A DNA stretch of 64,000 nucleotides from NCBI GenBank assembly GCA_977020255.1, contig CDROCS010000742.1, positions 1 to 64,000 on the forward strand, written 5' to 3'. The stretch comes from Obrimoposthia wandeli (taxonomy: Eukaryota). Shown here one piece after another: positions 3,001-64,000 of this stretch. The notes beneath the pieces are model-generated. The model ran no database searches. It was not told where the DNA came from and worked only from the letters and a program-made list of their open reading frames with translations. How positions within the stretch are numbered: position 1 is the stretch's first letter; the number at the start of each line of letters is the position of its first letter. A program made the translations under genes and the position numbers.

Positions 3001-6000
3001 AACATTTTAAGATAAAGATCGTTTATTCACTATTGACAAAACATCACGTATGCACCATTCTGACTGGTTATGCGACGACATTATTAGCTGAAGATCGTTT
3101 ACTCACTACTGACAAAACAACATAATTGCAACATGCTGACTGATCATGCACCGACATCATTAGCTGAAGATCGTTTATGGGCTGACACGTCTGCAACATA
3201 CTGACCGATTATGCACCAACATTTTAAGATGAAGATCGTTTATTCACTACTGACAAAAAATCACGACTGCAACATGCTGACTGATCATGCACCGACATCA
3301 TTAGCTGAAGATCGTTTATACACTACTGACAAAACATCACTACTGCAACATGCTGACCTGATTATTCACCGACATTATAAGCTGAAGATCATTTACTCAC
3401 TACTGACAAATAAAAACATCACTACTGCAACATGCTGATCGATTATGCAATTCCAACATTTTAAGATAAAGATCGTTTATCCACTACCGACAAAACATTA
3501 AGACTGCAATATGTGACTGGTTATGCAACGACATCATTAGCTGAAGATCGTTTACTCACTACTGACAAAAAAACATAATTGCAACATACTGACCTATTAT
3601 GCACCAACATTTTAAGATAAAGATCGTTTATTCACTATTGACAAAACATCACGACTGCAACATGATGACTGATCATGCACCGACATCATTATCTGAAGAT
3701 CGTTTATACACGTATGCAACATACTGACCGATTATGCACCAACATTTTAAGATAAAGATCGTTTATTCACTATTGACAAAACATCACGTATGCACCATTC
3801 TGACTGGTTATGCGACGACATTATTAGCTGAAGATCGTTTACTCACTACTGACAAAACAACATAATTGCAACATGCTGACTGATCATGCACCGACATCAT
3901 TAGCTGAAGATTGTTTATACACGTCTGCAACATACTGACCGATTATGCACCAACATTTTAAGATGAAGATCGTTTATTCACTACTGACAAAAAATCACGA
4001 CTGCAACATGCTGACTGATCATGCACCGACATCATTATCTGAAGATCGTTTACTCACTACTGACAAAACATCATGACTGCAACATGCTGACTGTTCATGC
4101 GCCGATATTTTAAGCTGAAGATCGTTTACTCACGACTGATAATACCCCACGACTGCAATATACTGACCTGATTATGCACCGACATTATAAGTTGAATATC
4201 ATTTACTCACTATTGACAAAACATCACTACTGCAACATGCTGACCTGATTATTCACCGACATTATAAGCTGAAGATCATTTATTCACTACTGACAAAACA
4301 TCACGACTGCAACATGCTGACAAATTATGCACCGACATTATTAGCTGAAGATCTTTTAATCACTCCTGACGAAATAACATAATAGCAACATTCTGACTGG
4401 TTAAGCACTGACATTATTAGCTGAAGATCGTTTATTCACTACTGACAAAACATAATTGCAACATGCTGACCTGATTATGCACCGACATTACAAGCTGAAG
4501 ATTGTTTATACACGTCTGCAACATTCTCTCTATTATGCACCGACATTATTAGCTCAACATCATTTACTCACTACTGCAACATACTGACCGATTATGCACC
4601 AACATTTTAAGCTGAAGATCATTTATTCACTACCGACAAAACATCACGACTGCAATACGCTGACCGTTTATGCAACGACATCATTAGCTGAAGATCGTTT
4701 ACTCACTACTGACTGGTTATGCACCGACTTTATCAGCTGAAGATCTTTTAATCACTCCTGACAAAACAACATAATTGCAACATGCTGACCGATTATGCAC
4801 CGACATTACAATCTGAAGATTGTTTATACACGTCTGCAACATTCTGACTAGTTAAGCACTGACATTATTAGCTGAAGATCGTTTACTCACTACTGACAAA
4901 ACAACATAATTGCAACATGCTGACTGGTTATGAGACGACATTATTAGCTGAAGATCGTTTACTCACAACTGACAAAACATCACGTCTGCAACATTCTGAC
5001 TGGTTAAGCACTGACATTATTAGCTGAAGATCGTTTATTCACTACTGACAAAACAACATAATTGCAACATGCTGACCTGATTATGCACCTACATTACAAG
5101 CTGAAGATTGTTTATACACGTCTGCAACATTCTGACTATTATGCACCGACATTATTAGCTCAACATCATTTACTCACTACTGCAACATACTGACCGATTA
5201 TGCACCAACATTTTAAGCTGTAGATCATTTATTCACTACCGACAAAACATCAAGACTGCAATATGCTGACTGTTTATGCAACGACATCATTAGCTGAAGA
5301 TCGTTTACTCACTACTGACAAAACATCAGGACTGCAAAATGCTGAACGTTTATGAACCAACATTTTAAGATGAAGATCGTTTATTCACTACTGACAAAAA
5401 AATCACGACTGCAACATGCTGACCTGATTATGCACCGACATTATTAGCTGAAGATCGTTTATTCACTACTGACAAAACATAATTGCAACATGCTGACCTG
5501 ATTATGCACCGACATTACAAGCTGAAGATTGTTTATACACGTCTGCAACATTCTCTCTATTATGCACCGACATTATTAGCTCAACATCATTTACTCACTA
5601 CTGCAACATACTGACCGATTATGCACCAACATTTTAAGCTGAAGATCATTTATTCACTACCGACAAAACATCACGACTGCAATACGCTGACCGTTTATGC
5701 AACGACATCATTAGCTGAAGATCGTTTACTCACTACTGACTGGTTATGCACCGACTTTATCAGCTGAAGATCTTTTAATCACTCCTGACAAAACAACATA
5801 ATTGCAACATGCTGACCGATTATGCACCGACATTACAATCTGAAGATTGTTTATACACGTCTGCAACATTCTGACTAGTTAAGCACTGACATTATTAGCT
5901 GAAGATCGTTTACTCACTACTGACAAAACAACATAATTGCAACATGCTGACTGGTTATGAGACGACATTATTAGCTGAAGATCGTTTACTCACAACTGAC

Positions 6001-9000
6001 AAAACATCACGTCTGCAACATTCTGACTGGTTAAGCACTGACATTATTAGCTGAAGATCGTTTATTCACTACTGACAAAACAACATAATTGCAACATGCT
6101 GACCTGATTATGCACCTACATTACAAGCTGAAGATTGTTTATACACGTCTGCAACATTCTGACTATTATGCACCGACATTATTAGCTCAACATCATTTAC
6201 TCACTACTGCAACATACTGACCGATTATGCACCAACATTTTAAGCCGTAGATCATTTTCTTCACTACCGACAAAACATCAAGACTGCAATATGCTGACCG
6301 TTTATGAACCAACATTTTAAGATGAAGATCGTTTATTCACTACTGACAAAAAAATCACGACTGCAACATGCTGACCTGATTATGCACCGACATTATTAGC
6401 TGAAGATCGTTTATTCACTACTGACAAAACAACATAATTGCAACATGCTGACTGGTTATGAGACGACATTATTAGCTGAAGCTCGTTTACTCACAACTGA
6501 CAAAACATCACGTCTGCAACATTCTGACTGGTTAAGCACTGACATTATTAGCTGAAGATCGTTTATTCAATTACTGACAAAAACAACAGAATTGCAACAT
6601 GCTGACCTGATTATGCACCTACATTACAAGCTGAAGATTGTTTATACACGTCTGCAACATTCTGACTATTATGCACCGACATTATTAGCTCAACATCATT
6701 TACTCACTACTGCAACATACTGACCGATTATGCACCAACATTTTAAGCTGTAGATCATTTATTCACTACCGACAAAACATCAAGACTGCAATATGCTGAC
6801 CGTTTATGAACCAACATTTTAAGATGAAGATCGTTTATTCACTACTGACAAAAAATCACGACTGCAACATGCTGACTGATCATGCACCGACATCATTATC
6901 TGAAGATCGTTTACTCACTACTGACAAAACATCATGACTGCAACATGCTGACTGTTCATGCGCCGATATTTTAAGCTGAAGATCGTTTACTCACGACTGA
7001 TAATACCCCACGACTGCAATATACTGACCTGATTATGCACCGACATTATAAGTTGAATATCATTTACTCACTATTGACAAAACATCACTACTGCAACATG
7101 CTGACCTGATTATTCACCGACATTATAAGCTGAAGATCATTTATTCACTACTGACAAAACATCACGACTGCAACATGCTGACAAATTATGCACCGACATT
7201 ATTAGCTGAAGATCTTTTAATCACTCCTGACGAAATAACATAATAGCAACATTCTGACTGGTTAAGCACTGACATTATTAGCTGAAGATCGTTTATTCAC
7301 TACTGACAAAACATAATTGCAACATGCTGACCTGATTATGCACCGACATTACAAGCTGAAGATTGTTTATACACGTCTGCAACATTCTCCCAATTATGCA
7401 CCGACATTATTAGCTCAACATCAATTACTCACTACTGCAACATACTGACCGATTATGCACCAACATTTTAAGCTGAAGATCATTTATTCACTACCGACAA
7501 AACATCACGACTGCAATACGCTGACCGTTTATGCAACGACATCATTAGCTGAAGATCGTTTACTCACTACTGACTGGTTATGCACCGACTTTATCAGCTG
7601 AAGATCTTTTAATCACTCCTGACAAAACAACATAATTGCAACATGCTGACCGATTATGCACCGACATTACAATCTGAAGATTGTTTATACACGTCTGCAA
7701 CATTCTGACTAGTTAAGCACTGACATTATTAGCTGAAGATCGTTTACTCACTACTGACAAAACAACATAATTGCAACATGCTGACTGGTTATGAGACGAC
7801 ATTATTAGCTGAAGATCGTTTACTCACAACTGACAAAACATCACGTCTGCAACATTCTGACTGGTTAAGCACTGACATTATTAGCTGAAGATCGTTTATT
7901 CACTACTGACAAACAACATAATTGCAACATGCTGACCTGATTATGCACCTACATTACAAGCTGAAGATTGTTTATACACGTCTGCAACATTCTGACTATT
8001 ATGCACCGACATTATTAGCTCAACATCATTTACTCACTACTGCAACATACTGACCGATTATGCACCAACATTTTAAGCTGTAGATCATTTATTCACTACC
8101 GACAAAACATCAAGACTGCAATATGCTGACTGTTTATGCAACGACATCATTAGCTGAAGATCGTTTACTCACTACTGACAAAACATCAGGACTGCAAAAT
8201 GCTGAACGTTTATGAACCAACATTTTAAGATGAAGATCGTTTATTCACTACTGACAAAAAATCACGACTGCAACATGCTGACCTGATTATGCACCGACAT
8301 TATTAGCTGAAGATCGTTTATTCACTACTGACAAAACATAATTGCAACATGCTGACCTGATTATGCACCGACATTACAAGCTGAAGATTGTTTATACACG
8401 TCTGCAACATTCTCTCTATTATGCACCGACATTATTAGCTCAACATCATTTACTCACTACTGCAACATACTGACCGATTATGCACCAACATTTTAAGCTG
8501 AAGATCATTTATTCACTACCGACAAAACATCACGACTGCAATACGCTGACCGTTTATGCAACGACATCATTAGCTGAAGATCGTTTACTCACTACTGACT
8601 GGTTATGCACCGACTTTATCAGCTGAAGATCTTTAATCACTCTGACAAAACAACATAATTGCAACATGCTGACCGATTATGCACCGACATTACAATCTGA
8701 AGATTGTTTATACACGTCTGCAACATTCTGACTAATTAAGCACTGACATTATTAGCTGAAGATCGTTTACTCACTACTGACAAAACAACATAATTGCAAC
8801 ATGCTGACTGGTTATGAGACGACATTATTAGCTGAAGATCGTTTACTCACAACTGACAAAACATCACGTCTGCAACATTCTGACTGGTTAAGCACTGACA
8901 TTATTAGCTGAAGATCGTTTATTCACTACTGACAAAACAACATAATTGCAACATGCTGACCTGATTATGCACCTACATTACAAGCTGAAGATTGTTTATA

Positions 9001-12000
9001 CACGTCTGCAACATTCTGACTATTATGCACCGACATTATTAGCTCAACATCATTTACTCACTACTGCAACATACTGACCGATTATGCACCAACATTTTAA
9101 GCTGTAGATCATTTATTCACTACCGACAAAACATCAAGACTGCAATATGCTGACCGTTTATGAACCAACATTTTAAGATGAAGATCGTTTATTCACTACT
9201 GACAAAAAAATCACGACTGCAACATGCTGACCTGATTATGCACCGACATTATTAGCTGAAGATCGTTTATTCACTACTGACAAAACATAATTGCAACATG
9301 CTGACCTGATTATGCACCGACATTACAAGCTGAAGATTGTTTATACACGTCTGCAACATTCTCTCTATTATGCACCGACATTATTAGCTCAACATCATTT
9401 ACTCACTACTGCAACATACTGACCGATTATGCACCAACATTTTAAGCTGAAGATCATTTATTCACTACCGACAAAACATCACGACTGCAATACGCTGACC
9501 GTTTATGCAACGACATCATTAGCTGAAGATCGTTTACTCACTACTGACTGGTTATGCACCGACTTTATCAGCTGAAGATCTTTTAATCACTCCTGACAAA
9601 ACAACATAATTGCAACATGCTGACCGATTATGCACCGACATTACAATCTGAAGATTGTTTATACACGTCTGCAACATTCTGACTAGTTAAGCACTGACAT
9701 TATTAGCTGAAGATCGTTTACTCACTACTGACAAAACAACATAATTGCAACATGCTGACTGGTTATGAGACGACATTATTAGCTGAAGATCGTTTACTCA
9801 CAACTGACAAAACATCACGTCTGCAACATTCTGACTGGTTAAGCACTGACATTATTAGCTGAAGATCGTTTATTCACTACTGACAAAACAACATAATTGC
9901 AACATGCTGACCTGATTATGCACCTACATTACAAGCTGAAGATTGTTTATACACGTCTGCAACATTCTGACTATTATGCACCGACATTATTAGCTCAACA
10001 TCATTTACTCACTACTGCAACATACTGACCGATTATGCACCAACATTTTAAGCTGTAGATCATTTATTCACTACCGACAAAACATCAAGACTGCAATATG
10101 CTGACTGTTTATGCAACGACATCATTAGCTGAAGATCGTTTACTCACTACTGACAAAACATCAGGACTGCAAAATGCTGACCGTTTATGAACCAACATTT
10201 TAAGATGAAGATCGTTTATTCACTACTGACAAAAAAATCACGACTGCAACATGCTGACCTGATTATGCACCGACATTATTAGCTGAAGATCATTTACTCA
10301 CGGCTGCAACATTCTGACTGGTTATGCGCCGACATTATAAGCTGAAAATCGTTTACTAACGACTGATAAATCCCCACGACTGCAACATACTGACCTGATT
10401 ATGCACCGACATTATAAGCTGAAGATTGTTTATACACGTCTGCAACATTCTGACTATTATGCACCGACATTATTAGCTCAACATCATTTACTCACTACTG
10501 CAACATACTGACCGATTATGCACCAACATTTTAAGCTGAAGATCATTTATTCACTACCGACAAAACATCACGACTGCAATACGCTGACCGTTTATGCAAC
10601 GACATCATTAGCTGAAGATCGTTTACTCACTACTGACTGGTTATGCACCGACTTTATCAGCTGAAGATCTTTTAATCACTCCTGACAAAACAACATAATT
10701 GCAACATGCTGACCGATTATGCACCGACATTACAATCTGAAGATTGTTTATACACGTCTGCAACATTCTGACTAGTTAAGCACTGACATTATTAGCTGAA
10801 GATCGTTTACTCACTACTGACAAAACAACATAATTGCAACATGCTGACTGGTTATGAAACGACATTATTAGCTGAAGATCGTTTACTCACAACTGACAAA
10901 ACATCACGTCTGCAACATTCTGACTGGTTAAGCACTGACATTATTAGCTGAAGATCGTTTATTCACTACTGACAAAACAACATAATTGCAACATGCTGAC
11001 CTGATTATGCACCTACATTACAAGCTGAAGATTGTTTATACACGTCTGCAACATTCTGACTATTATGCACCGACATTATTAGCTCAACATCATTTACTCA
11101 CTACTGCAACATACTGACCGATTATGCACCAACATTTTAAGCTGTAGATCATTTATTCACTACCGACAAAACATCAAGACTGCAATATGCTGACTGTTTA
11201 TGCAACGACATCATTAGCTGAAGATCGTTTACTCACTACTGACAAAACATCAGGACTGCAAAATGCTGACCGTTTATGAACCAACATTTTAAGATGAAGA
11301 TCGTTTATTCACTACTGACAAAAAAATCACGACTGCAACATGCTGACCTGATTATGCACCGACATTATTAGCTGAAGATCGTTTATTCACTACTGACAAA
11401 ACATAATTGCAACATGCTGACCTGATTATGCACCGACATTACAAGCTGAAGATTGTTTATACACGTCTGCAACATTCTCTCTATTATGCACCGACATTAT
11501 TAGCTCAACATCATTTACTCACTACTGCAACATACTGACCGATTATGCACCAACATTTTAAGCTGAAGATCATTTATTCACTACCGACAAAACATCACGA
11601 CTGCAATACGCTGACCGTTTATGCAACGACATCATTAGATGAAGATCGTTTACTCACTACTGACTGGTTATGCACCGACTTTATCAGCTGAAGATCTTTT
11701 AATCACTCCTGACAAAACAACATAATTGCAACATGCTGACCGATTATGCACCGACATTACAATCTGAAGATTGTTTATACACGTCTGCAACATTCTGACT
11801 AGTTAAGCACTGACATTATTAGCTGAAGATCGTTTACTCACTACTGACAAAACAACATAATTGCAACATGCTGACTGGTTATGAGACGACATTATTAGCT
11901 GAAGATCGTTTACTCACAACTGACAAAACATCACGTCTGCAACATTCTGACTGGTTAAGCACTGACATTATTAGCTGAAGATCGTTTATTCACTACTGAC

Positions 12001-13416
12001 AAAACAACATAATTGCAACATGCTGACCTGATTATGCACCTACATTACAAGCTGAAGATTGTTTATACACGTCTGCAACATTCTGACTATTATGCACCGA
12101 CATTATTAGCTCAACATCATTTACTCACTACTGCAACATACTGACCGATTATGCACCAACATTTTAAGCTGTAGATCATTTATTCACTACCGACAAAACA
12201 TCAAGACTGCAATATGCTGACTGTTTATGCAACGACATCATTAGCTGAAGATCGTTTACTCACTACTGACAAAACATCAGGACTGCAAAATGCTGACCGT
12301 TTATGAACCAACATTTTAAGATGAAGATCGTTTATTCACTACTGACAAAAAAATCACGACTGCAACATGCTGACCTGATTATGCACCGACATTATTAGCT
12401 GAAGATCATTTACTCACGGCTGCAACATTCTGACTGGTTATGCGCCGACATTATAAGCTGAAAATCGTTTACTAACGACTGATAAATCCCCACGACTGCA
12501 ACATACTGACCTGATTATGCACCGACATTATAAGCTGAAGATTGTTTATACACGTCTGCAACATTCTGACTATTATGCACCGACATTATTAGCTCAACAT
12601 CATTTACTCACTACTGCAACATACTGACCGATTATGCACCAACATTTTAAGCTGTAGATCATTTATTCACTACCGACAAAACATCAAGACTGCAATATGC
12701 TGACCTGATTATGCACCGACATTTTTAGCTGAAGATCGTTTACTTACTACTGACAAAACATGCTGACCTGATTATGCACCGACATTATTAGCTGAAGATC
12801 GTTTATTCACTACTGACAAAAAATCACGACTGCAACATGCTGACTGATCATGCACCGACATCATTAGCTGAAGATCGTTTACTTACTACTGATAAAACAT
12901 GCTGACCTGATTATGCACCGACATTTTTAGCTGAAAATCATTTACTCACGGCTGCAACATGCTGACCGATTATGCACCGACATCATTAGCTGAAGATCGT
13001 TTACTTACTACTGACAAAACATGCTGACCTGATTATGCACCGACATTATTAGCTGAAGATCATTTACTCACGGCTGCAACATTCTGACTGGTTATGCACC
13101 TACATTATTAGCTGAAGATCATTTACTCACTACTGACAAAATATCACTACTGCAACATGCTGACTGGTTATCCACCAACATTATAAGATGCAGATCATTT
13201 ATTCACTACTGACAAAACATCACGACTGCAACATGCTGACCTGATTATGCACCGACATTATTAGCTGAAGATCATTTACTCACGGTTGCAACATTCTGAC
13301 TGGTTATGCGCCGACATTATAAGCTGAAAATCGTTTACTAACGACTGATAAATCCCCACGACTGCAACATACTGACCTGATTATGCACCGACATTATAAG
13401 CTGAAGATCGTTTATT
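1..13416. repeat. Satellite array with ~76-bp and ~58-bp monomers and higher-order repeats; runs off the left edge
   Basis: Monomer GCTGAAGATCGTTTACTCACTACTGACAAAACATCACGACTGCAACATGCTGACCGATTATGCACCGACATTATTA plus deletion variants. Diagnostic variants recur at ~733 bp (1747/2478/3211), ~950-1027 bp, 2861 bp (3961/6822) and ~2117 bp (10341/12458). Confidence 0.98.
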
Positions 13417-18781: not shown

Positions 18782-19529
18782 TGTTGGGTTAAATAATTAA
18801 TTTCATACATTAATTAATTTAAAAATTAATAAAAATTAATAAATATATTTAGTCAATTAAAATTGACATTAACTGAAGTGCCCACAGTCAGGGAGGTTTT
18901 ACTTGTCAGCCTCCGACGGGGTGGACGTCCCGTTTGGCCTTGCCAGGCTCGTCAGGATGGCGGCGAAAATAGTAGTTGACAAAAGAGATTGTTATCTATT
19001 TTTATCACAAAAATAATTACCGCCCAGCTCTCCAGACCTCCCAGCAGATTTGGTCTTCTCCATCATCCTCCTCAATCATCCTCTCGAACAGCGACAGATC
19101 TCTTCCATAGCGGCAACATTCTCGACGTGAATCGATCAATCCGAAATTACCCCAGTTGCTGCTTATCCTATGCCCTCAGCCAGTGCAATGATTTCCCGAG
19201 CCACTCTCGGGAAAGCGGAGCAAATCAGCTCGTTTCCTCTCTTACTTCTGTCCCTGCGAGGCCACGCGGACTGTTTGCATCCGACATTGACATTTGCCAC
19301 ATCGATTATAGACGACACATGCATGAGTGTGTGTATGTCTCTCCCTATTTGGATATAAATAGATTATTTGTCTGCAATGGCAGATGATTAAAAAAGAATT
19401 TACTGATTTTAGAGTTATTATCCTTTGACCAAACATTGATACAATTTGATTTTTCAGAACTATTAGAAATACAATCCCCAAACATTGATTCAATTTGATT
19501 TTTTGTCAGATACATTAAAGAATATAACA
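18782..19529. mobile_element. LTR-like element distantly related to the hammerhead-bearing LTRs at 45.9-50.7 kb and 63.3 kb
   Basis: Starts TGTTGGG and ends TATAACA. Same layout as the other copies (A-rich stretch, hammerhead on the minus strand, CA/TG-rich middle, duplicated 3' block). No TSD found; the left flank TGATCCGGA resembles TGACCCGGA before the 46-49 kb units. Confidence 0.6.
18909..18961 (-). ncRNA. Degenerate type I hammerhead ribozyme (G12->C, imperfect stem I)
   Basis: Minus strand: GCCAUC-CUGACGA-GCCU GGCA AGGC-CAAA-CGGG acguccac CCCG-UC/GGAGGC. Confidence 0.7.
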
Positions 19530-42093: not shown

Positions 42094-44158
42094 TAACTTT
42101 CCCCTTCACAAATCAAATTTACACTTCTTCAGCCATTCGATTCTCCTGGGAAGTACTCCTCTTGGAAACTGAATTGATACCTGTCGTGGACTCAAGAATC
42201 CTTTTTTTCATACTGGTCACTATCCTTGCTTCTTTTAATTGGGTCCTTTTTAACAAGCACCTTTTCATTTACTTCAAATATCCTTTCTCCTCTTCTTTCA
42301 TTGTCTAACTTCTTTAACTTTTCAGCTACGATTTGTTGGTTCTTCCTTACGTCTTGAATGATATTTTCTTTATTGTTTGTTGTTGTATTTGATGCTTGAA
42401 TTGTTATTTTTCTTCCTTAAATTACCTCAAACGGTGAATGTTTTGCAGAACTATTTACTGTTGCATTTATAGCAAATTCAATTTGTGGCAATAAATCGTG
42501 CCAACATTTTCCTGTTTTAGTATACGCTCTTGTCGTTACAATCATATCTCTTACCATGCGTATAACCCTTTCAGCTAGACCATTAGATTGGTGTTGATAA
42601 GGTGCTGTAAGCTCTTGTTCAATACCAAAATTTTCTAGCCAATTCTGAAAATAATTGCCAGTAAATATTCGTCTCTATCTGTTAAAATACTCTTAGGTTT
42701 TCCAAATTTATATATCCAATTTGTCTCGAGGGCTTTAGTAATTGTTATTTCATCTTCTTTTGAGGTTGCTGATAGTGATACCAGTTTACTAAATCGATCG
42801 ATTACTATCAACATATATTTCTTTTAAGATCTTCCTTCCTTCATGTGGGCTATATTGACAATTATTTGATCTAATAAAATTTCTTTGATTATAGGAATAT
42901 ATATTTCTTTTGTTCTGCTTGTTTCAATTTTTCTTTTGGCACAGTAAACGCACTTTGATATGCATTCTTTTATTTCTTGAAACATTCCTTTTAAATAGAA
43001 GTTATCTTTCATATAATTATAAACTTTTTGTATTCCTAGGTGACAAAGATATTGGTGAATTTCATTAATAATTTCATTAGCGTTTTTCGGACTTATGACA
43101 ATTAAATCTGTAAAGTTTTGTTCAAAATAAAGGATATCATCACAGAGTTTAAGTTTCTCTCTTATCTGACAAATCCAACTTCTTTTGCATTCTTCTGAAA
43201 AATCTTTACTTTCCAGTTGGGGGAAAACTTTCATTTCTTTCACATGAATATCTTCTTGTTGTATTTTCCTTATCTTACTCAAGAAGTTGTCTTTATTTAG
43301 TGAGTTAATATATCGTATTTTAGATCTATTATCTTGTGCATCAGTATGTTTAGTTTCACACTGAGCACATACTGTTTCATTTAATCTTGAAATACCATCG
43401 GCATTACCATGGTCAATACCTTTACGATGTTCTAACTTAAAATTAAATTCTGATAAATTTGCCAGCCATGTTTGAAATTGAGGACTGATTGGTTTTTTCG
43501 TCGTTCTTAAAAATACTAATGCTTTATGATCTGTTCTTGTCAAAAATTCTGTTCCATATAAATATTGTTTGAAATGCATAATAAATTCGTATACTTCTAA
43601 AAGTTATTTTCTGGTAACACAATAACCTTTCTCATAGGAAGTAAGATATCTTGAAGCGTATGCAATCACTTTTTTGTTTCTCATTTCATCCAGTTGGCTC
43701 AATACTGCCCCAATTGCACCAAAGCTTGCGTCTGTATCAATTATAAATTTTCTATTTCACCTGGGAAAATCTAATATGGGAGCTGTTGTTAATTTTTTTT
43801 CAGGAGTGCAAAACTTGTTTTACAACCCGTGACCATTGTATTGACTTCTTATCGCCGGACCCCACTGCATATAGTGGAACTGCAATATTTGCATAATCTT
43901 TAATAAATCGTCGATAATAGTTTGCCATTCCTAAAAATGATTTTAGTTTTCCACTATAATCAGATTCTTTAAAAATCATAATTTCGTTGACTTTCGACTG
44001 ATTTATATGTATTTCGCTTTCTGTTATTGTATGACCTAGAAATTTTAGCAGTTTCTGGCTAATGATGCATTTATTAGGGTTAATTTTGAGGCCTGTCGCT
44101 GCTATTCTTTTGAATACCTCTCTTAATAATTTATAATGTTCTTCTTGGTTGTTACTAT

Positions 44159-45655
44159 TGTTAGGTTTAGGATTTAATAAACTTTAAAAAAATAATTAAT
44201 TGATAAAATAGTAAAATGAATCCTTGGAAGCAAGGTTCAAAATAGAATTTAAAATTAAATAATAAAATAAAAATGTATTTTAGGACCTTCATAAGGTCAA
44301 GTGTTTGATGTGTAGTATATATGGATATTAAATCTATTAAATGGGCCCCAAAAAGAAGATACGAGAAATAGCCAAAAAAGAAATTAAGAGATATTCCAAT
44401 TAAGAAAGTTGAAGAAATGTTGGCTAATTAAGAAGAAGAAAAACCCATTAGCTATTGTGGGAAAGGACCAACTGCTCGTCGGAGGACACCATTAGTAGAG
44501 CGAGATCCAGACAATCGTAGTGGGAAGCAAGCAGCCGGCGTCTCATTGAAGGTAAGAAGCACTTAGCTAAAGTGTTATTTAATTAATTCCTTTTCCATTA
44601 AGGAAATCCAAGTTGCTGAGAAGACGCTTCGTATATAAACGAGACAATTCATCTCTAAATCCAGTTGGGAAAAGTAACTAAAAATTGAATAACTAAATAA
44701 TTCGAGAAATAGAAAATTAACGAGGACCGTTCGAGAAAACTGTAATACGGCTAAACGTGCTCGGAAAAGTCGGAGAAACGAGAAAAGCGACGCGAGACAA
44801 TTCATATCTCGAACCACTACGATCAGCACCCAAACCGGAACTGATCTGTGAACCGGAATCCGAGCAATATCTCTGAGAACACGGATCGGAGACCCCAGAA
44901 TCCAAGCTGCCAATATCGAGTGGAATTACTGGTGAGAAAAGCGCAGTGCCAAGTGAAGACGAGTTGAGTTTAGACGTATTATAAAAGTTAAGCTATCTCA
45001 TACATATTTTATATCGAAGTTATAAAAGTTAAGTTGTCTCATACATATTTGATATCGAAAGTTGTTAAAGGAAAGGTTAATGTTGTCTCATATATATTAG
45101 ATATCGAAAGTTTTAAAAAGAAAAGTTAAAATTGCCCCAATTTTTACATCAAAAGTTTATAAAAGAAAAAGTTAAAATTAGTCCATATTTTATATTGAAA
45201 GTTTACAAAAGAATCTACATTCAAAAAATTAAACTTGATAAACTTATCGAAATATTAGGCCGATTAAAATCGATACGTAAGACATCCCCATTGCGTGAAT
45301 TCTAAGGACGTATTTAGGACTAATTGTTGTAATTTTTAAGAACCTAGTTAGTGTGAGTTTAGAAAATAAAGATTTCCTACATTAAAAAGTGTTGTCTTCA
45401 ACAAACCCTTGCAAGCAGGTTAGAACCAATTCTCCATACGTTACATCACACTAAGGGAAATTCTACAGTCATCGTGTACACAACTCTCACACATCTCCAC
45501 AACAACAAACAAAAACAAACCTTCAGATTAAACAAGTAAGACAGAAGACAAGCTAAGTAGGCCACAAACAACTGCAAGCCCTACTTCTATAGAACTCACG
45601 TTGGGGATCTACCATCAGAGGATCTATTTAAGAGTTTCAAATAGAAACCCCAACA
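44159..45655. mobile_element. Solo LTR C (1497 bp) inserted in the RT domain
   Basis: TGTTAGG...CCCCAACA with 4-bp TSD CTAT (44155-58 / 45656-59); ~40-bp internal repeats at 44980-45200. Confidence 0.93.
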
Positions 45656-46028
45656 CTATAAACAAGGATATCATCCAGATTTACAATTGTTCCTTTGAAC
45701 AACAAATCATCCAATATTTTATGCATCAAACTCTGAAATGTTGCCGGTGCTGTAGCCAACCCAAATGGCATGCGAATGAAACAAAATTGTCCTAATTTTG
45801 TACTGAAAGCCGTTTTTGCCTGAGACTTATTCTCTAGATCTACCTGATAATAAGCTTGTGTTGGGAAAATATTAGCTATTTGTTTAAAAAAGAAAAATAA
45901 AAATATAAAATTTTTAAAGAAATAAAAGGTAAAAAGGAATTAATTAATTGAAAATTAATTGGGAACTTTCCTTAATTAGGGAAAAGTTCCGATTTTAAAA
46001 TGTGCACTTTGGCATTTTTGTCTATTCA

Positions 46029-46080
46029 ATCTCCGACGGGAAAAAAGCCCGTTTCGCCCTGCCGGGCTCATCAGGGAGAT
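46029..46080 (-). ncRNA. Type I hammerhead ribozyme, intact (unit 1); predicted cleavage between 46035 and 46034
   Basis: AUCUCC-CUGAUGA-GCCC GGCA GGGC-GAAA-CGGG cuuuuuu CCCG-UC/GGAGAU: full core and three perfect stems. Confidence 0.95.
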
Positions 46081-46915
46081 GGCTTGTTATCTCTAACTTC
46101 GCGGTGGATTCCGCGAAGCCAGAGATAACAATAATAAAAAGCCAGGGAAAGATTTACCCCTTTCATGTGCCGACGAATATCGTCGACATATGTTGTTGGT
46201 GTGCGCAAGTACACATTTCAACACACACTGTTGATTTAGGAATATCCAAAAGCATAAAATCAGAACTAAATCACAATCACCCAAATATTGGACTCGCCAA
46301 CATGGTGCGGAAATACTTAAATATAGAAACACAAAAAGGAGTCCACACTAGCATGGAAGATGCAAATCACACCCGAAAAATTTTCATAATGAAGGAGAAA
46401 ATGTTGAATAGAGAGTTTGATTTGACCGAGGTGATGAATCCACCATCTAGCGAGAACAACCCCAGTTCATTGTTCTCGCATAAGACCGGAAACTCGGAGT
46501 CCGGTACACAAAACTCCCCGATTTTGTTGGATTAAGGTAGTATTGTTATTATTTTATTTCTGTTTTCATTCTTGTCTAAATTTTTAACGATATTTAACCA
46601 GACATGATTGTGATTAATAAAACATTGATCAGTTATAACATACAAACAACACTAGGTAACAATAGAAACAAGACAAAATAGTTTAACTAATAATTAAGAT
46701 AAAAATTATGATTCTGAGGACAGAAACTTTTATGACCCGGAGGATTGTTGGGAAAATATTAGCTATTTGTTTAAAAAAGAAAAATAAAAATATAAAATTT
46801 TTAAAGAAATAAAAGGTAAAAAGGAATTAATTAATTGAAAATTAATTGGGAACTTTCCTTAATTAGGGAAAAGTTTCGATTTTAAAATGTGCACTTTGGC
46901 ATTTTTGTCTATTCA

Positions 46916-46965
46916 ATCTCCGACGGGAAAAAAGCCTGCGTTTCGCCCTGCCGGGCTCATCAGGG
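46916..46965 (-). ncRNA. Hammerhead, impaired (unit 2)
   Basis: Core and stem II intact. A 28-bp deletion removes the stem I 5' strand, and extra bases disturb stem III (possibly an assembly error). Confidence 0.75.
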
Positions 46966-47825
46966 TGGATTCCGCGAAGCCAGAGATAACAATAATAAAA
47001 AGCCAGGGAAAGATTTACCCCTTTCATGTGCCGACGAATATCGTCGACATATGTTGTCTTATGCGAGAACGATGAACTGGGTTGTTCTCGCTAGATGGTG
47101 GATTCATCACCTCGGTCAAATCAAACTCTCTATTCAACATTGTTGATTTAGGAATATCCAAAAGCATAAAATCAGAACTAAATCACAATCACCCAAATAT
47201 TGGACTCGCCAACATGGTGCGGAAATACTTAAATATAGAAACACAAAAAGGAGTCCACACTAGCATGGAAGATGCAAATCACACCCGAAAAATTTTTCAT
47301 AATGAAGGAGAAAATGTTGAATAGAGAGTTTGATTTGACCGAGGTGATGAATGCTGCATCTAGCGAGAACAACCCCAGTTCATCGTTCTCGCATAAGACC
47401 GGAAACTCGGAGTCCGGTACACAAAACTCCCCGATTTTGTTGGATTAAGGTAGTATTGTTATTATTTTATTTCTGTTTTCATTCTTGTCTAAATTTTTAA
47501 CGATATTTAACCAGACATGATTGTGATTAATAAAACATTGATCAGTTATAACATACAAACAACACTAGGTAACAATAGAAACAAGACAAAATAGTTTAAC
47601 TAATAATTAAGATAAAAATTATGATTCTGAGGACAGAAACTTTTATGACCCGGAGGATTGTTGGGAAAATATTAGCTATTTGTTTAAAAAGAAAAATAAA
47701 AATATAAAATTTTTAAAGAAATAAAAGGTAAAAGGAATTAATTAATTGAAAATTAATTGGGAACTTTCCTTAATTAGGAAAAGTTTCGATTTTAAAATGT
47801 GCACTTTGGCATTTTTGTCTATTCA

Positions 47826-47873
47826 ATCTCCGACGAGAAAAAAGCCCGTTTCGCCCTGCCGGGCTCATCAGGG
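47826..47873 (-). ncRNA. Hammerhead with stem I deletion (unit 3)
   Basis: Core intact; stem III has a G-U pair (CGGG/CUCG); 28-bp deletion. Confidence 0.8.
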
Positions 47874-48735
47874 TGGATTCCGCGAAGCCAGAGATAACAA
47901 TAATAAAAAGCCAGGGAAAGATTTACCCCTTTCATGTGCCGACGAATATCGTCGACATATGTTGTCTTATGCGAGAACGATGAACTGGGTTGTTCTCGCT
48001 AGATGGTGGATTCATCACCTCGGTCAAATCAAACTCTCTGTTCAACATTGTTGATTTAGGAATATCCAAAAGCATAAAATCAGAACTAAATCACAATCAC
48101 CCAAATATTGGACTCGCCAACATGGTGCGGAAATACTTAAATATAGAAACACAAAAAGGAGTCCACACTAGCATGGAAGATGCAAATCACACCCGAAAAA
48201 TTTTCATAATGAAGGAGAAAATGTTGAATAGAGAGTTTGATTTGACCGAGGTGATGAATCCACCATCTAGCGAGAACAACCCCAGTTCATCGTTCTCGCA
48301 TAAGACCGGAAACTCGGAGTCCGGTACACAAAACTCCCCGATTTTGTTGGATTAAGGTAGTATTGTTATTATTTTATTTCTGTTTTCATTCTTGTCTAAA
48401 TTTTTAACGATATTTAACCAGACATGATTGTGATTAATAAAACATTGATCAGTTATAACATACAAACAACACTAGGTAACAATAGAAACAAGACAAAATA
48501 GTTTAACTAATAATTAAGATAAAAATTATGATTCTGAGGACAGAAACTTTTATGACCCGGAGGATTGTTGGGAAAATATTAGCTATTTGTTTAAAAAAGA
48601 AAAATAAAAATATAAAATTTTTAAAGAAATAAAAGGTAAAAAGGAATTAATTAATTGAAAATTAATTGGGAACTTTCCTTAATTAGGGAAAAGTTTCGAT
48701 TTTAAAATGTGCACTTTGGCATTTTTGTCTATTCA

Positions 48736-48783
48736 ATCTCCGACGGGAAAAAAGCCCGTTTCGCCCTGCCGGGCTCATCAGGG
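48736..48783 (-). ncRNA. Hammerhead with stem I deletion (unit 4)
   Basis: Core and stems II and III perfect; 28-bp deletion. Confidence 0.8.
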
Positions 48784-49645
48784 TGGATTCCGCGAAGCCA
48801 GAGATAACAATAATAAAAAGCCAGGGAAAGATTTACCCCTTTCATGTGCCGACGAATATCGTCGACATATGTTGTCTTATGCGAGAACGATGAACTGGGT
48901 TGTTCTCGCTAGATGGTGGATTCATCACCTCGGTCAAATCAAACTCTCTATTCAACATTGTTGATTTAGGAATATCCAAAAGCATAAAATCAGAACTAAA
49001 TCACAATCACCCAAATATTGGACTCGCCAACATGGTGCGGAAATACTTAAATATAGAAACACAAAAAGGAGTCCACACTAGCATGGAAGATGCAAATCAC
49101 ACCCGAAAAATTTTCATAATGAAGGAGAAAATGTTGAATAGAGAGTTTGATTTGACCGAGGTGATGAATCCACCATCTAGCGAGAACAACCCCAGTTCAT
49201 CGTTCTCGCATAAGACCGGAAACTCGGAGTCCGGTACACAAAACTCCCCGATTTTGTTGGATTAAGGTAGTATTGTTATTATTTTATTTCTGTTTTCATT
49301 CTTGTCTAAATTTTTAACGATATTTAACCAGACATGATTGTGATTAATAAAACATTGATCAGTTATAACATACAAACAACACTAGGTAACAATAGAAACA
49401 AGACAAAATAGTTTAACTAATAATTAAGATAAAAATTATGATTCTGAGGACAGAAACTTTTATGACCCGGAGGATTGTTGGGAAAATATTAGCTATTTGT
49501 TTAAAAAAGAAAAATAAAAATATAAAATTTTTAAAGAAATAAAAGGTAAAAAGGAATTAATTAATTGAAAATTAATTGGGAACTTTCCTTAATTAGGGAA
49601 AAGTTTCGATTTTAAAATGTGCACTTTGGCATTTTTGTCTATTCA

Positions 49646-49697
49646 ATCTCCGACGGGAAAAAAGCCCGTTTCGCCCTGCCGGGCTCATCAGGGAGAT
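49646..49697 (-). ncRNA. Type I hammerhead ribozyme, intact (terminal LTR); predicted cleavage between 49652 and 49651
   Basis: Identical to the unit 1 ribozyme. Confidence 0.95.
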
Positions 49698-52600
49698 GGC
49701 TTGTTATCTCTAACTTCGCGGTGGATTCCGCGAAGCCAGAGATAACAATAATAAAAAGCCAGGGAAAGATTTACCCCTTTCATGTGCCGACGAATATCGT
49801 CGACATATGTTGTTGGTGTGCGCAAGTACACATTTCAACACACACACTCACACAGCAGACATCACTCAACTCACTCACTCACTCTCACTACTCACTCAAT
49901 CGCTCACTCAATCCCTTGTTCACTCACTCTCCCTACTCACTCACTTACTTATCCATTGTGCACATGTGTGTGTATGTTTAATTTAAAATTTTTCCGCCTG
50001 CCCAGAGTTCGACAGGCGGTGGAATTTCCCGGCTGCACATGTGAGTGTGTGCAGAGCCGGGAAATATCGGTTCTTCTCCTATCTGCCCAGATCTATCCAG
50101 TATGTGTGCAGCAGTTAGATATTTAAGCTGCACACTACTAAATGAATATATATACGACAAAACTACAAATAATAATAAAAAATCAAAATCAGAAAATTAT
50201 TATTACCAGAAATCAGAAAATTATTATTATCAAACGGTTGCTGTTTTCTCTGCTGTTCGCCAACCCACACAGACAACTATTTTTCGCTATCTCCCTGCAG
50301 TTGGATTCAGATATAAAGTGGCAGTAAAATTAAATTTCTTAACACTATATACACTCTAACAGAAAATTTAAAAATTATTATTACCAAAGATATTATCTGA
50401 AATCAAAAATTTATCTTACAGAAAACTATTACAAGAAATTGATTAAAGCGTAACCAAAAATATTTATTTGCGGACAATTGATTATTATTTGTCAAAGATA
50501 TTACCAAAGATATTACCTGAAATCAAAAATTTATCTTACAGAAAACTATTACAAGAAATTGATTAAAGCGTGACAAAAATTATTTATTTGCGGACAATTG
50601 ATTATTATTTATTTGAGAATATATTATTAGAGAAAACCATTTTTCTTTTCTTCTCGTTTATTAACACTTGTCCAATATCTAATGTCGTAAATATTTTAGC
50701 ATCACCTAGACAATCGACAAGAGTTGTGCATCCGGTATAGGAAATGTAAACTTCTTGGTTACAGCATTCAATTGTCTACAGTCAACACACATTCGAATTG
50801 TATTGTCTGGCTTCTTCACAATGACCAATGGCGAGTTCCAAGGACTTTCACAACGCATAATTACATTTACTTTGAGTAAATTTTCAATCATTTCATCAAC
50901 TTGGTTTTCTAAATGCATCAGTTAACGTCTAGGATTTTGGCACATACGATCGGCAATAGTCTCAATCTTATGAGAGACAATTTTGGTATATCCAAGATCA
51001 AATTTAGAACACATAAATATTTTCCCAAATTCCTCAATATAATGTCCTAGAATTGAGTCTCTGTCTCATTTTAAAGAATTACATATTTTATATGTTCTTT
51101 CTTTTGAGGAAAACGTTTTCATCATGCAAGACGAGTCCAAATTACATACTTCCTGTAGCTTTATCCCAAATGTTTTCATTGTATTGATTCCACCAATAAA
51201 TTCTGGTTAAATTTCTTCTACAACGATTATTTCCAAAACATTCTATTTTCCATTCCATAACACTTTAGTATTAAACCTACCTAAGGGCTGTTGATGATTA
51301 TTCGAAAAAACTCCACTCAGATATAAATTACTCTGTCTCATTTTGTGACATCCTACTTTCTTCTAACAATCCTTACTCATTACAGTAACTGATTCTCGGG
51401 AGTCCCACAGCATTTTCACATCTATATCATTAATCTTCATTCACGACCATCATTCTTCATATACATCTTTTCATTCCGCTTTGGTTCTATATGCTCGATC
51501 CTACCGACGAAATGTGAGCAATGGTATCGCTCACGTTTCCCTGATTAACATCATGTATTATCATTTCTTCACTATAACAATCTTCTAAATCTTAATTATT
51601 TTCTTTCACTTCTTCTGTTATACAAAGTACTCTTGAAGTTTGATGTGGGTTCTTTAAAATATAGCAGCTGTTGAAATTGTGACCTTCTTTTCCACAAATC
51701 AAACATTTGTGATTGAGAGGACATTGATTTCGGAAATTATCTTTTTCACCACAACAAAAACATGCTCCTGGATGAAGTTCTTCTCTTTTTGTGACAGGCA
51801 GTCCCTTAGTTAAGTTATATTTTCTTTTAACTATTTGTTTTAAGGAAAACCTTGGCATTGGTCTCTTATTATTTTGATTTTGGGTGTCTGTATTTAAGTA
51901 TCTTTTTTCTTCATTAACATAATTTCTTTGTTCCTGATGTACTGATACTGGTATTGGTTTCTTTGTATTGTTTGCGAAATTACGGTTGTCAGGGCGGTTG
52001 AATTCTCTTTTTACTGTATTCGCATACGTATTATGAATTTGTGCAATCACGGTATTCTTTTTCTCGATTTCGCTGTACACCTTTGCCAACGCCTCTATTT
52101 CTTCTTTTGGCATCTTTGGTTTTAATAAAAACTGCTCCTATCGGTTTCTTTGCATTGATTTATCCGATATAATATGTCAAATCTACATAATTTATACATT
52201 TGCATCATAACACAAGAATAGTGCTTTAACCAGCACAAATATATATAATTTAATAGCTTATGAAGGTCAAGACGAGCAAATCATATTCAGTTGGATAATA
52301 ATTCCGAACAAACTAAATCCATTTACTCAAAACGTAATTAAGTATTGTCCATTATTTAAATAAAAATCTACTCTAAGCTTTTAAAATTGCTTTAGTGTTA
52401 CATTATCGAAGCAATTGTAGGATGTTTTGTTGTTAAACACCTGCGAAATTGTTAATATTTTTGATAGAAATTTGATTCAAACAGAAAAGTCAATTATTTA
52501 TTGAAGACTTAAAACGCTGAATAGGTTATCGAAAAATTAAACCTCAATATTTGTTATAAAACGTAATAAAAAGTCAGCAATGAAATTGTAAACAATCATC

Positions 52601-63313: not shown

Positions 63314-64000
63314 TGTTGGAAATATTTAAGCATATGAGGCAGTTTTTGAATAAATAAAACATATTAAAATTTAAATAAAATGAAATTAATTAATTAAGAA
63401 ATTTCCTTAATTAGGGAAATATTTTTGCAATTAAAATCTTTATGCATTTTTCATTTTTATTAACTCTTGTTCAATCCCCGACCGGCTTAACCGGTTTCGC
63501 CCTGTCGGGCTCATCAGGGAATGGCAGACTTATCTCTGACTTCGCGGTGGGCAAAATGCTCGCGAAGTCAGAGATAAGTTGGGAAGATTCTCCCTTTACC
63601 ATGTGCCGACGAGCATCGTCGACACATGGTATCAATGTGCATAAATAAAATCAAAAACACACACATATACAAATAAAATTACACAAACACATTCATACTT
63701 ACTTACTCACTTCTCACTATTCTCTTTCATCCTCACTTGCTCACTCACTCACATGTACTCATTAACCTACTCAATATGTATGTGTGTGAGATTAATTTAT
63801 TATTTTTCTCTGCCAAGAACCGCAGCCTCAGTGTGTTTGCGTGCCGGGGATCGACTGGTGCAGAGAGACTAAATATATGGATTTTCCTGCTGTATACACA
63901 GCATTATTATTTTTCCAGTATGAAAGCTGGTTGCGCTGTTGCAGAAGGGCAGAACCAGAAAATTATTATTAAATTAATCACAATTCAATAGTGGTATTTG
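63314..64000. mobile_element. Diverged hammerhead-bearing LTR; runs off the right edge
   Basis: TGTTGGAAATATT start, TTCCTTAATTAGGGAAA hairpin, hammerhead, two hairpins and CAGAAAATTATTATTA, all colinear with 49476-50250. Confidence 0.85.
63474..63522 (-). ncRNA. Type I hammerhead ribozyme; predicted cleavage between 63480 and 63479
   Basis: AUUCC-CUGAUGA-GCCC GACA GGGC-GAAA-CCGG uuaag CCGG-UC/GGGGAU. Confidence 0.92.

Follow-up and report, generated by a model that had tools for sequence, protein, structure and literature searches.

The window analysed here is a 64,000-nucleotide stretch of Obrimoposthia wandeli DNA (contig CDROCS010000742.1, positions 1 to 64,000), which carries at 45859-50666 an insert of 4,808 bp with five head-to-tail copies of a hammerhead ribozyme motif. 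The motif was not acquired by this array. It is a standard part of the long terminal repeat (LTR) of an autonomous Ty3/gypsy family, where it lies on the strand opposite to the element's genes. On balance, the hammerhead appears to be under selection as an RNA structure of the antisense strand. It is probably functional on antisense transcripts, because its core is kept, its three helices covary and it stands 100-190 nt from the same LTR end across diverged families. We consider it likely that the insert is a recent copy of this family that has lost internal sequence and undergone local re-duplication; the antisense LTR hammerhead of the family would cut antisense RNA. The main interest lies in the hammerhead of the family as a whole, and the array itself is of lesser weight.

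The parent family

The left end of the insert is a 370-nt LTR piece for which at least 2,680 candidates exist in the 1.35-Gb genome, the 40 scored being 96-100% identical. The earlier note on this DNA had proposed a genome search for full-length elements with paired LTRs and pol. Such elements exist: they were located through same-strand pairs of the 370-nt piece lying 8-14 kb apart, and five were fetched. Their LTR pairs of ~0.85-1.2 kb are 95-99% identical and contain variable internal tandem repeats, the 370-nt piece representing one end of the LTR only. All of their long open reading frames (ORFs) are opposite in strand to the hammerhead. Besides gag, the family encodes a Monjiviricetes_fusion glycoprotein (PF24664), an aspartyl protease (PR), reverse transcriptase (RT; RVT_1), RNase H (RH; RT_RNaseH) and integrase (IN; Integrase_H2C2 and rve) according to Pfam, with a separate RNase_T ORF downstream. 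On the gene strand, a sequence resembling a primer-binding site (PBS), TGGTGAGCCCGAAGACTC, is found 1-2 nt past the 5' LTR; its 84 exact matches in the genome are mostly PBS sites themselves. The 3' LTR is preceded by ..CCGGAGGAT in family copies, and target-site duplications (TSDs) of 4 bp flank all four copies that could be checked (TTTA, TTAC, TCTT and GTAG). The family is an autonomous, true integrase-type, retrovirus-like Ty3/gypsy element of 8-14 kb. Its sense strand corresponds to the plus strand of the window, with the hammerhead at LTR nt 171-222, antisense to the genes, the PBS and the polypurine tract (PPT) side. We infer that this part of the LTR is U3, since a TATA-like TATATATA lies near LTR nt ~680.

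A Penelope origin, which the earlier note had left open until other copies were inspected for their ends, TSDs and flanking genes, was rejected. The TG..CA termini, 4-bp TSDs, PBS and the PR-RT-RH-IN set are not those of a GIY-YIG-bearing Penelope-like element (PLE), and the repeat unit consists of a Gypsy LTR plus the tail of an exonuclease ORF.

Three further features of the family were observed. A single long ORF places the PF24664 fusion glycoprotein directly upstream of protease-RT-RNaseH-integrase (L032:3819-9002 (-) and L031:7932-9998 (-); also in the related contigs L071-L077). An env gene usually lies downstream of pol. The extra ORF downstream of the integrase is an RNase T / DEDD 3'-5' exonuclease (PF00929; L032:1586-2482 (-), L034:1585-2214 (-), L031:1584-2423 (-)). 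The 3' part of the LTR varies in tandem repeat number, with a 120-bp duplication in the window (Table 1) and arrays of ~35 bp and ~70 bp in L033/L038 (C413) and L036 (C3368), so that LTR length ranges from ~0.85 kb to well over 1.2 kb.

Hammerhead motifs in the window

The two outer motifs are canonical type I hammerheads, reading on the minus strand AUCUCC-CUGAUGA-GCCC GGCA GGGC-GAAA-CGGG CUUUUUU CCCG-UC/GGAGAU, with an open helix I of 6 bp, a helix II of 4 bp and a helix III of 5 bp. Their minimum-energy fold is the hammerhead. Both match Rfam Hammerhead_1 (RF00163) at 32.4 bits (46029-46080 (-) and 49646-49697 (-); E 4.9e-5 in an 8.5-kb scan), and the three inner cores give only weak type-III-like Rfam matches. 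Because the type I matches were lost when the whole window was scanned at a stricter filter setting, we built our own covariance model from 25 diverged copies of the same genome and ran it with filters off. This model recovers all five motifs, at 74.2 (46029), 74.2 (49646), 60.2 (48736), 57.7 (47826) and 47.1 bits (46916), plus two further matches in other LTRs of the window. The core CUGAUGA...GAAA...GUC is kept in all five copies.

The earlier note had described five minus-strand cores arranged head to tail, and both the cores and its cleavage positions hold: the C17 of each GUC triplet falls exactly where predicted (Table 1), with spacings of 887, 910, 910 and 910 nt. Five working ribozymes are another matter, as only the two outer ones are intact and fold as hammerheads. 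In the inner copies, the 27-nt deletion has taken away both the 3' arm of the hairpin upstream and the 5' strand that helix I originally had. A new upstream AUCCaCC, supplied by microhomology, can pair with five of the six positions of helix I (against GGAGAU) around a small internal loop, and the minimum-energy folds of these three motifs are not hammerheads. We regard the inner ribozymes as impaired but not proven dead, and predict competence for the two outer motifs only. A type III reading of the inner motifs was rejected, their Rfam type III scores of 21-28 bits comparing with a gathering score of 48.5 and their helix pairs being broken.

Conservation and covariation

A genome scan with RF00163 returned 30 matches among 74 scored candidates, six of them above the cut-off (35.8-38.5 bits). 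About 25 of the 30 are diverged versions that share a context, namely a palindromic hairpin with arms TTATCTCT/AGAGATAA just upstream of the hammerhead, a conserved (G/A)CC preceding helix I and UGA following it, and an LTR tip ..CCCAACA 100-190 nt downstream, which the motif faces in nearly all families. When the 25 diverged copies are aligned, the core columns are invariant or nearly so and the helices vary. Of all cells in the paired columns, 92% are paired, versus 33-53% with slid partners. Changes on both sides of a pair are seen in 39 cells, distributed over 8 of the 15 pairs and all three helices, a result reached by none of 500 shuffles. On the hammerhead strand, G.U pairs outnumber A.C pairs by 24 to 13. 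Within the family, the 52-nt hammerhead is identical in 29 of 32 other LTRs and has ~7-fold fewer differences per site than the remainder of the 370 nt.

Protein matches near the 30 hammerhead loci are of mixed orientation, blurred by nested insertions, and are clear at only two places. In a sister family (L055), an exonuclease ORF lies downstream and antisense to the hammerhead; in the L047/L048 family, gag lies upstream and antisense to it. Both agree with the antisense model.

Several observations were made beside these results. A related diverged LTR at 63316-64000 (-) of the window carries an intact hammerhead at 63474-63522, which scores 53 bits with our own model and has a fold z-score of -3.1. 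Helices I and III of this motif differ from those of the main family by compensatory changes, and upstream of it stands a palindromic hairpin of 19 bp. Its LTR tip, ..TTTCCAACA, is at ~63316, and the rest of that element would extend past the window end. At 18909-18961 (-), a distant LTR hammerhead has decayed, with C in place of core G12 (CCAAAC vs CGAAAC) and a mismatch in helix I; an LTR tip, ..AACCCAACA, follows ~150 nt downstream. The palindromic hairpin TTATCTCT.../...AGAGATAA, GATA-like on both strands, is kept 3-9 nt upstream of the hammerhead in most families (46084-46131 (-), 63530-63580 (-), L042-L047, L059, L061 and L062). Farther upstream lies a second hairpin (AUGUGUCGACGA..UCGUCGGCACAU), in which two families retain a U.G wobble on the hammerhead strand. 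These upstream hairpins may be RNA structures or DNA binding sites. In addition, one group of families (L041, L043, L049, L056, L062-L064 and L068) repeats the helix-I 5' strand together with the start of the core (ACCUCCCUGAUUGUGGGCAUUUCAG) ~15-40 nt downstream of the cleavage site. This repeat may pair with the 3' strand of helix I in place of the first copy and give an alternative fold, or form a 5'-terminal hairpin in the downstream product.

Structure of the insert

The earlier note had described TG...CA termini, a 4-bp CTTG TSD and the absence of RT and integrase, all of which we confirm. The insert begins TGTTGGG and ends TTAACA, CTTG stands on both sides, and ORF and domain analysis detected no RT, IN, gag or pol within it. 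The sole coding remnant, present once per unit, is the final ~101-105 codons of the RNase T-like ORF. The insert interrupts the RT gene of an older Gypsy element, and excising it together with one CTTG restores the RT reading frame (..LDIGQAYYQVDLE..). Short contigs from other copies of this host element give the empty site directly, with 45854 joined to 50667 and 4812 bases skipped. As shown by the CTTG TSD and the canonical LTR tips, the insert entered via integrase. It is young, since its left and right LTR pieces are 100% identical across 370 nt (45859-46228 vs 49476-49845). It lies antisense within the minus-strand host element, whose strand is that of the ribozymes, so host read-through would include all five motifs. 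With its LTR termini, its 4-bp TSD and every segment homologous to copies that encode PR-RT-RH-IN in order, the insert has the make-up of a defective Ty3/gypsy element.

Table 1. Features of the insert and of the interrupted host element (window coordinates)
Feature	Position	Strand	Remarks
Host Gypsy element	42674..52113	-	older; RT gene split by insert; from ORFs/domains
Host RH/IN	42674-44156	-
Host RT pieces	50629-51167 and 45655-45876	-
Host gag ORF	51592-52113	-	zinc knuckle
Left TSD	45855..45858		CTTG
Truncated 5' LTR	45859..46228	+	nt 1-370 of ~1.19-kb LTR; begins TGTTGGG; 100% identical to 49476-49845
Hammerhead 1	46029..46080	-	intact type I; helix I AUCUCC/GGAGAU; core CUGAUGA..GAAA; C17 46035
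Palindromic hairpin	46084..46131	-	21 bp; arms TTATCTCT.../...AGAGATAA; 3 nt upstream of hammerhead 1
Internal 3'-terminal piece, copy 1	46229..46745	+	RNase T-like ORF tail (46230-46532), 3' untranslated region (UTR), GGAGGAT tract abutting next LTR start
Inner LTR fragment 1	46746..47057	+	LTR nt 1-~340; 27-nt deletion
Hammerhead 2	46916..46970	-	lacks 27 nt in helix I; helix III has a further 2-nt bulge; C17 46922
Inverted 86-bp piece	47056..47141	-	from RNase T-like ORF tail; = C917 12748-12834
Inverted 86-bp piece, recurrences	47964-48049 and 48874-48959	-
Internal tail copy 2	47131..47658	+
Inner LTR fragment 2	47659..47965	+	27-nt deletion
Hammerhead 3	47826..47878	-	27-nt deletion; C17 47832
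Internal tail copy 3	48041..48565	+
Inner LTR fragment 3	48566..48875	+	27-nt deletion
Hammerhead 4	48736..48788	-	27-nt deletion; C17 48742
Internal tail copy 4	48949..49475	+	ends ..CCGGAGGAT directly before LTR
RNase T-like ORF tails	46230-46532, 47130-47445, 48038-48352, 48948-49262	+
Complete 3' LTR	49476..50666	+	1,191 bp; TGTTGGG...TTAACA; 120-bp tandem duplication at 50379-50610
Hammerhead 5	49646..49697	-	intact; identical to hammerhead 1; C17 49652
Right TSD	50667..50670		CTTG

To resolve the interior, each segment was mapped onto one full-length family copy. A junction with a few bases of microhomology links LTR nt 1-370 to the ~520 nt that end the internal region. In this tail are exonuclease codons ~195-299, the 3' UTR and the PPT side; no PBS is present in the window copy. 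A 910-bp module then occurs three times, composed of the ~520-nt internal 3' tail, LTR nt 1-~340 with the 27-nt deletion, and the 86-bp inverted piece. The junctions of the array fall at LTR nt ~340-370 and the predicted cleavage site at nt 176/177; with the junctions away from the cleavage sites, nothing points to an origin in ribozyme-made circles. The interior was probably scrambled by microhomology-mediated template switches or deletions together with a tandem triplication, either in the cDNA or after insertion. We read the array as a one-off rearranged, dead copy, which arose when a normally integrated element underwent template switching, deletion and triplication in place, and not as a mobile retrozyme-like family.

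Proposed mechanism and alternative explanations

An antisense RNA crossing the LTR, initiated at an LTR-internal antisense start or reading in from flanking DNA, would fold the hammerhead and cut itself 176 nt inside the 5' boundary of the LTR. Because cleavage by a type I hammerhead takes place close to its own 3' end, the ribozyme would remain on the upstream product, which would carry a 2',3'-cyclic phosphate, and the downstream product would begin GGAGAU with an uncapped 5'-OH. At the 3' LTR, such a cut would detach the antisense RNA of the element interior from the capped RNA upstream; at the 5' LTR, it would detach read-out into host DNA. The antisense transcripts of the element would in this way be severed at every LTR, with a possible benefit in keeping antisense or double-stranded RNA in check. 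Lying antisense to the PBS and the genes, the ribozyme could neither cut nor circularise the element's own genomic RNA. That the element uses its hammerhead to sever or terminate antisense LTR transcripts is a tentative proposal, which we would place clearly below an even chance.

Several points weigh against a functional antisense hammerhead. The two intact window copies, at 32.4 bits, are below the RF00163 gathering score of 34, so the Rfam type I search suggested by the earlier note matched them only under threshold and did not extend to the inner three. Activity at cellular Mg2+ could be low, because helix I has just 6 bp and no demonstrated tertiary contact. The diverged copies were gathered by means of a hammerhead covariance model, and such a model favours sequences that pair. 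Conservation within the family is unexceptional, 35 of 324 windows of 52 columns being equally or more conserved than the hammerhead. In the distant families, its orientation is known mainly from LTR-tip homology, nested insertions blurring the direct evidence. The closest relatives by Pol, seven metagenome contigs (L071-L077) with 44-54% Pol identity and the same glycoprotein-Pol layout, have no hammerhead in their available DNA, which includes a recognisable 3' LTR or LTR pair in only one of them. Finally, the sequencing runs that contain window sequence are four DNA runs (short contigs, one sample) and no RNA run.

Some of these points would fit a hammerhead-like sequence that does not cleave itself and is instead a neutral passenger of the LTR or acts there at the DNA level, for example in a promoter or enhancer beside the palindromic GATA-like hairpin. 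The low Rfam score, the equal conservation of other LTR stretches and the want of an RNA run are all in keeping with it, as is the position of the motif beside a long palindrome whose arms contain AGATAA on both strands. We nevertheless find it unlikely, as the invariant core nucleotides are all kept, the three helices have compensatory substitutions across families, several other families of the genome exceed the Rfam cut-off (up to 38.5 bits) and the excess of G.U over A.C points to pairing of RNA on the hammerhead strand. An assembly artefact is a different concern. The family is highly repeated, the inner units are 99-100% identical, contig depth is close to nil in the bins unique to units 3 and 4 and the only runs come from a single sample, probably the one assembled, so the inner triplication or the whole array could have been created during assembly. 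However, read-derived contigs extend across the part of unit 2 that bears the deletion (bin 46839-47015; row at 46937), units 2-4 carry a few private changes such as a CA insertion at ~46943 and a T at 47835, and the outer boundaries and TSD are exact. The contigs of the DNA runs also confirm the empty site and the high copy number, and give no count of array units. We regard an artefact as very improbable.

The earlier note had instead seen an LTR-retrozyme-like system, in which a non-autonomous element is mobilised by a Ty3/gypsy helper. Here, monomers of 887-910 nt would be cut from a minus-strand transcript and ligated to circles that serve as transposition intermediates. Its descriptive basis holds: five head-to-tail hammerhead units of ~0.9 kb in LTR-derived repeats, TG..CA ends of the integrase type, a 4-bp TSD and no pol. 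The unit size is within the range of plant retrozyme circles (PMC7761336), and read-through from the host Gypsy element, which lies on the ribozyme strand, could provide the transcript. What lacks support is the idea of a family. The diagnostic junctions, LTR nt 370 with the internal tail and the 27-nt deletion with the 86-bp inverted piece, were found at no second locus among the scored genome candidates, a search limited to the 40 best of ~2,000 candidates each time, which also tempers our own reading of a unique array. The insert has no PBS, and its hammerheads run antisense to the strand that carries the family's PBS and PPT, being ordinary LTR features of an autonomous element. The three inner ribozymes required for monomer release have lost part of helix I and do not fold as hammerheads, the junctions are not at the cleavage site, and no RNA run is among those containing the sequence. 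Nor is there a separate helper, since that role belongs to the parent family itself. Taken together, a retrozyme-like element appears most unlikely. There is an equally slim chance that the locus is a retrozyme at birth, a gene-less Gypsy derivative in host read-through whose RNA would be cut at the two intact sites at least and ligated to circular RNA. If true, this would show concretely how LTR retrozymes, the origin of which is an open question (PMC7761336), can derive from autonomous LTR elements.

Comparison with known ribozyme-bearing elements

Animal hammerheads have been placed in Penelope-like elements and non-LTR retrozymes, and LTR retrozymes in plants (PMC7761336; bioRxiv 10.64898/2026.07.22.740005; PMC4209133). 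In all of these the hammerhead is on the element's own RNA strand. In contrast, the hammerhead described here is conserved and covarying, lies in the true LTRs of autonomous, envelope-bearing animal Gypsy elements, and is found on the opposite strand. The earlier note knew of no animal integrase-type LTR family with hammerheads, and this stands: the literature searched, whose coverage is incomplete, yielded no description of autonomous animal LTR elements with a hammerhead, nor of any hammerhead lying antisense in an LTR. If the hammerhead cleaves, these elements invest in the processing of antisense transcripts. Management of antisense or double-stranded RNA, or of read-in transcription, by a ribozyme within a retroelement then becomes a testable idea, and a third type of retroelement-ribozyme association would be added.

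Plant LTR retrozymes are multi-copy non-autonomous families whose type III, sense-strand hammerheads share a strand with the PBS (tRNA-Met) and the PPT (PMC4918200; PMC7761336). The insert resembles them as a non-coding, LTR-bounded derivative with Gypsy-like termini, a 4-bp TSD, a hammerhead in each LTR-type direct repeat (the left "LTR" being only the first 370 nt of 1.19 kb) and units of ~0.7-1 kb between ribozymes. It differs in its type I topology, in the position of the hammerhead opposite to the PBS and genes of the family and in the presence of the motif in the autonomous parent. The window derivative has no PBS and is apparently single-copy, without further loci of the same non-autonomous structure among the scored candidates.

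The hammerheads of PLEs are found on the sense strand of pseudo-LTRs and are for the most part minimal, their helix III being very short; they function as dimers and accompany a GIY-YIG/telomerase-like RT (PMC4209133, PMC7229834, bioRxiv 10.64898/2026.07.22.740005). PLEs and metazoan non-LTR retrozymes share with our case type I hammerheads in the terminal repeats of animal retroelements and their occurrence in tandem arrays. Unlike them, the family has a 5-bp helix III, true LTRs with TG..CA, 4-bp TSDs, a PBS and PR-RT-RH-IN. Another repeat family of this genome (L053, L054 and L069) does carry a minimal hammerhead, AUACUGACGAGUCCCGAACAGGACGAAAUUGCAG, with a very short helix III. It resembles the PLE type (PMC4209133) and differs from the LTR hammerhead.

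The works on HDV-like (hepatitis delta virus-like) ribozymes cited in PMC4209133 describe, as far as they are represented there, sense-strand ribozymes of non-LTR retrotransposons (R2, L1Tc and others) that trim the 5' end of the element RNA from a co-transcript. On that description, the likeness is a self-cleaving ribozyme as standard equipment of an autonomous retrotransposon, cleavage being predicted in our case. The difference is that the present ribozyme is antisense and, as a type I hammerhead, would remain with the upstream product.

Among LTR-bearing viruses, human T-cell leukaemia virus type 1 (HBZ) and human immunodeficiency virus type 1 (antisense RNA) have an LTR-associated functional product or signal opposite to gag-pol, to which the antisense LTR hammerhead, predicted here from its sequence, can be likened. 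We know of no ribozyme involved in either system.

Other observations

Two of the related metagenome contigs hold ORFs worth recording. L072 has a 691-aa RNase_T ORF in the same place as the exonuclease ORF of the family. Just past the 3' LTR of the related element in L071, a DNA_pol_B_2 ORF of the protein-primed polymerase type (L071:16872-18689) possibly marks a Maverick/Polinton-like neighbour. Within the window itself, positions 1-13000 are unlike the remainder, with a sustained strong negative GC skew (about -0.24) and ~37-39% GC over 13 kb; this tract is probably a long strand-biased repeat or satellite.

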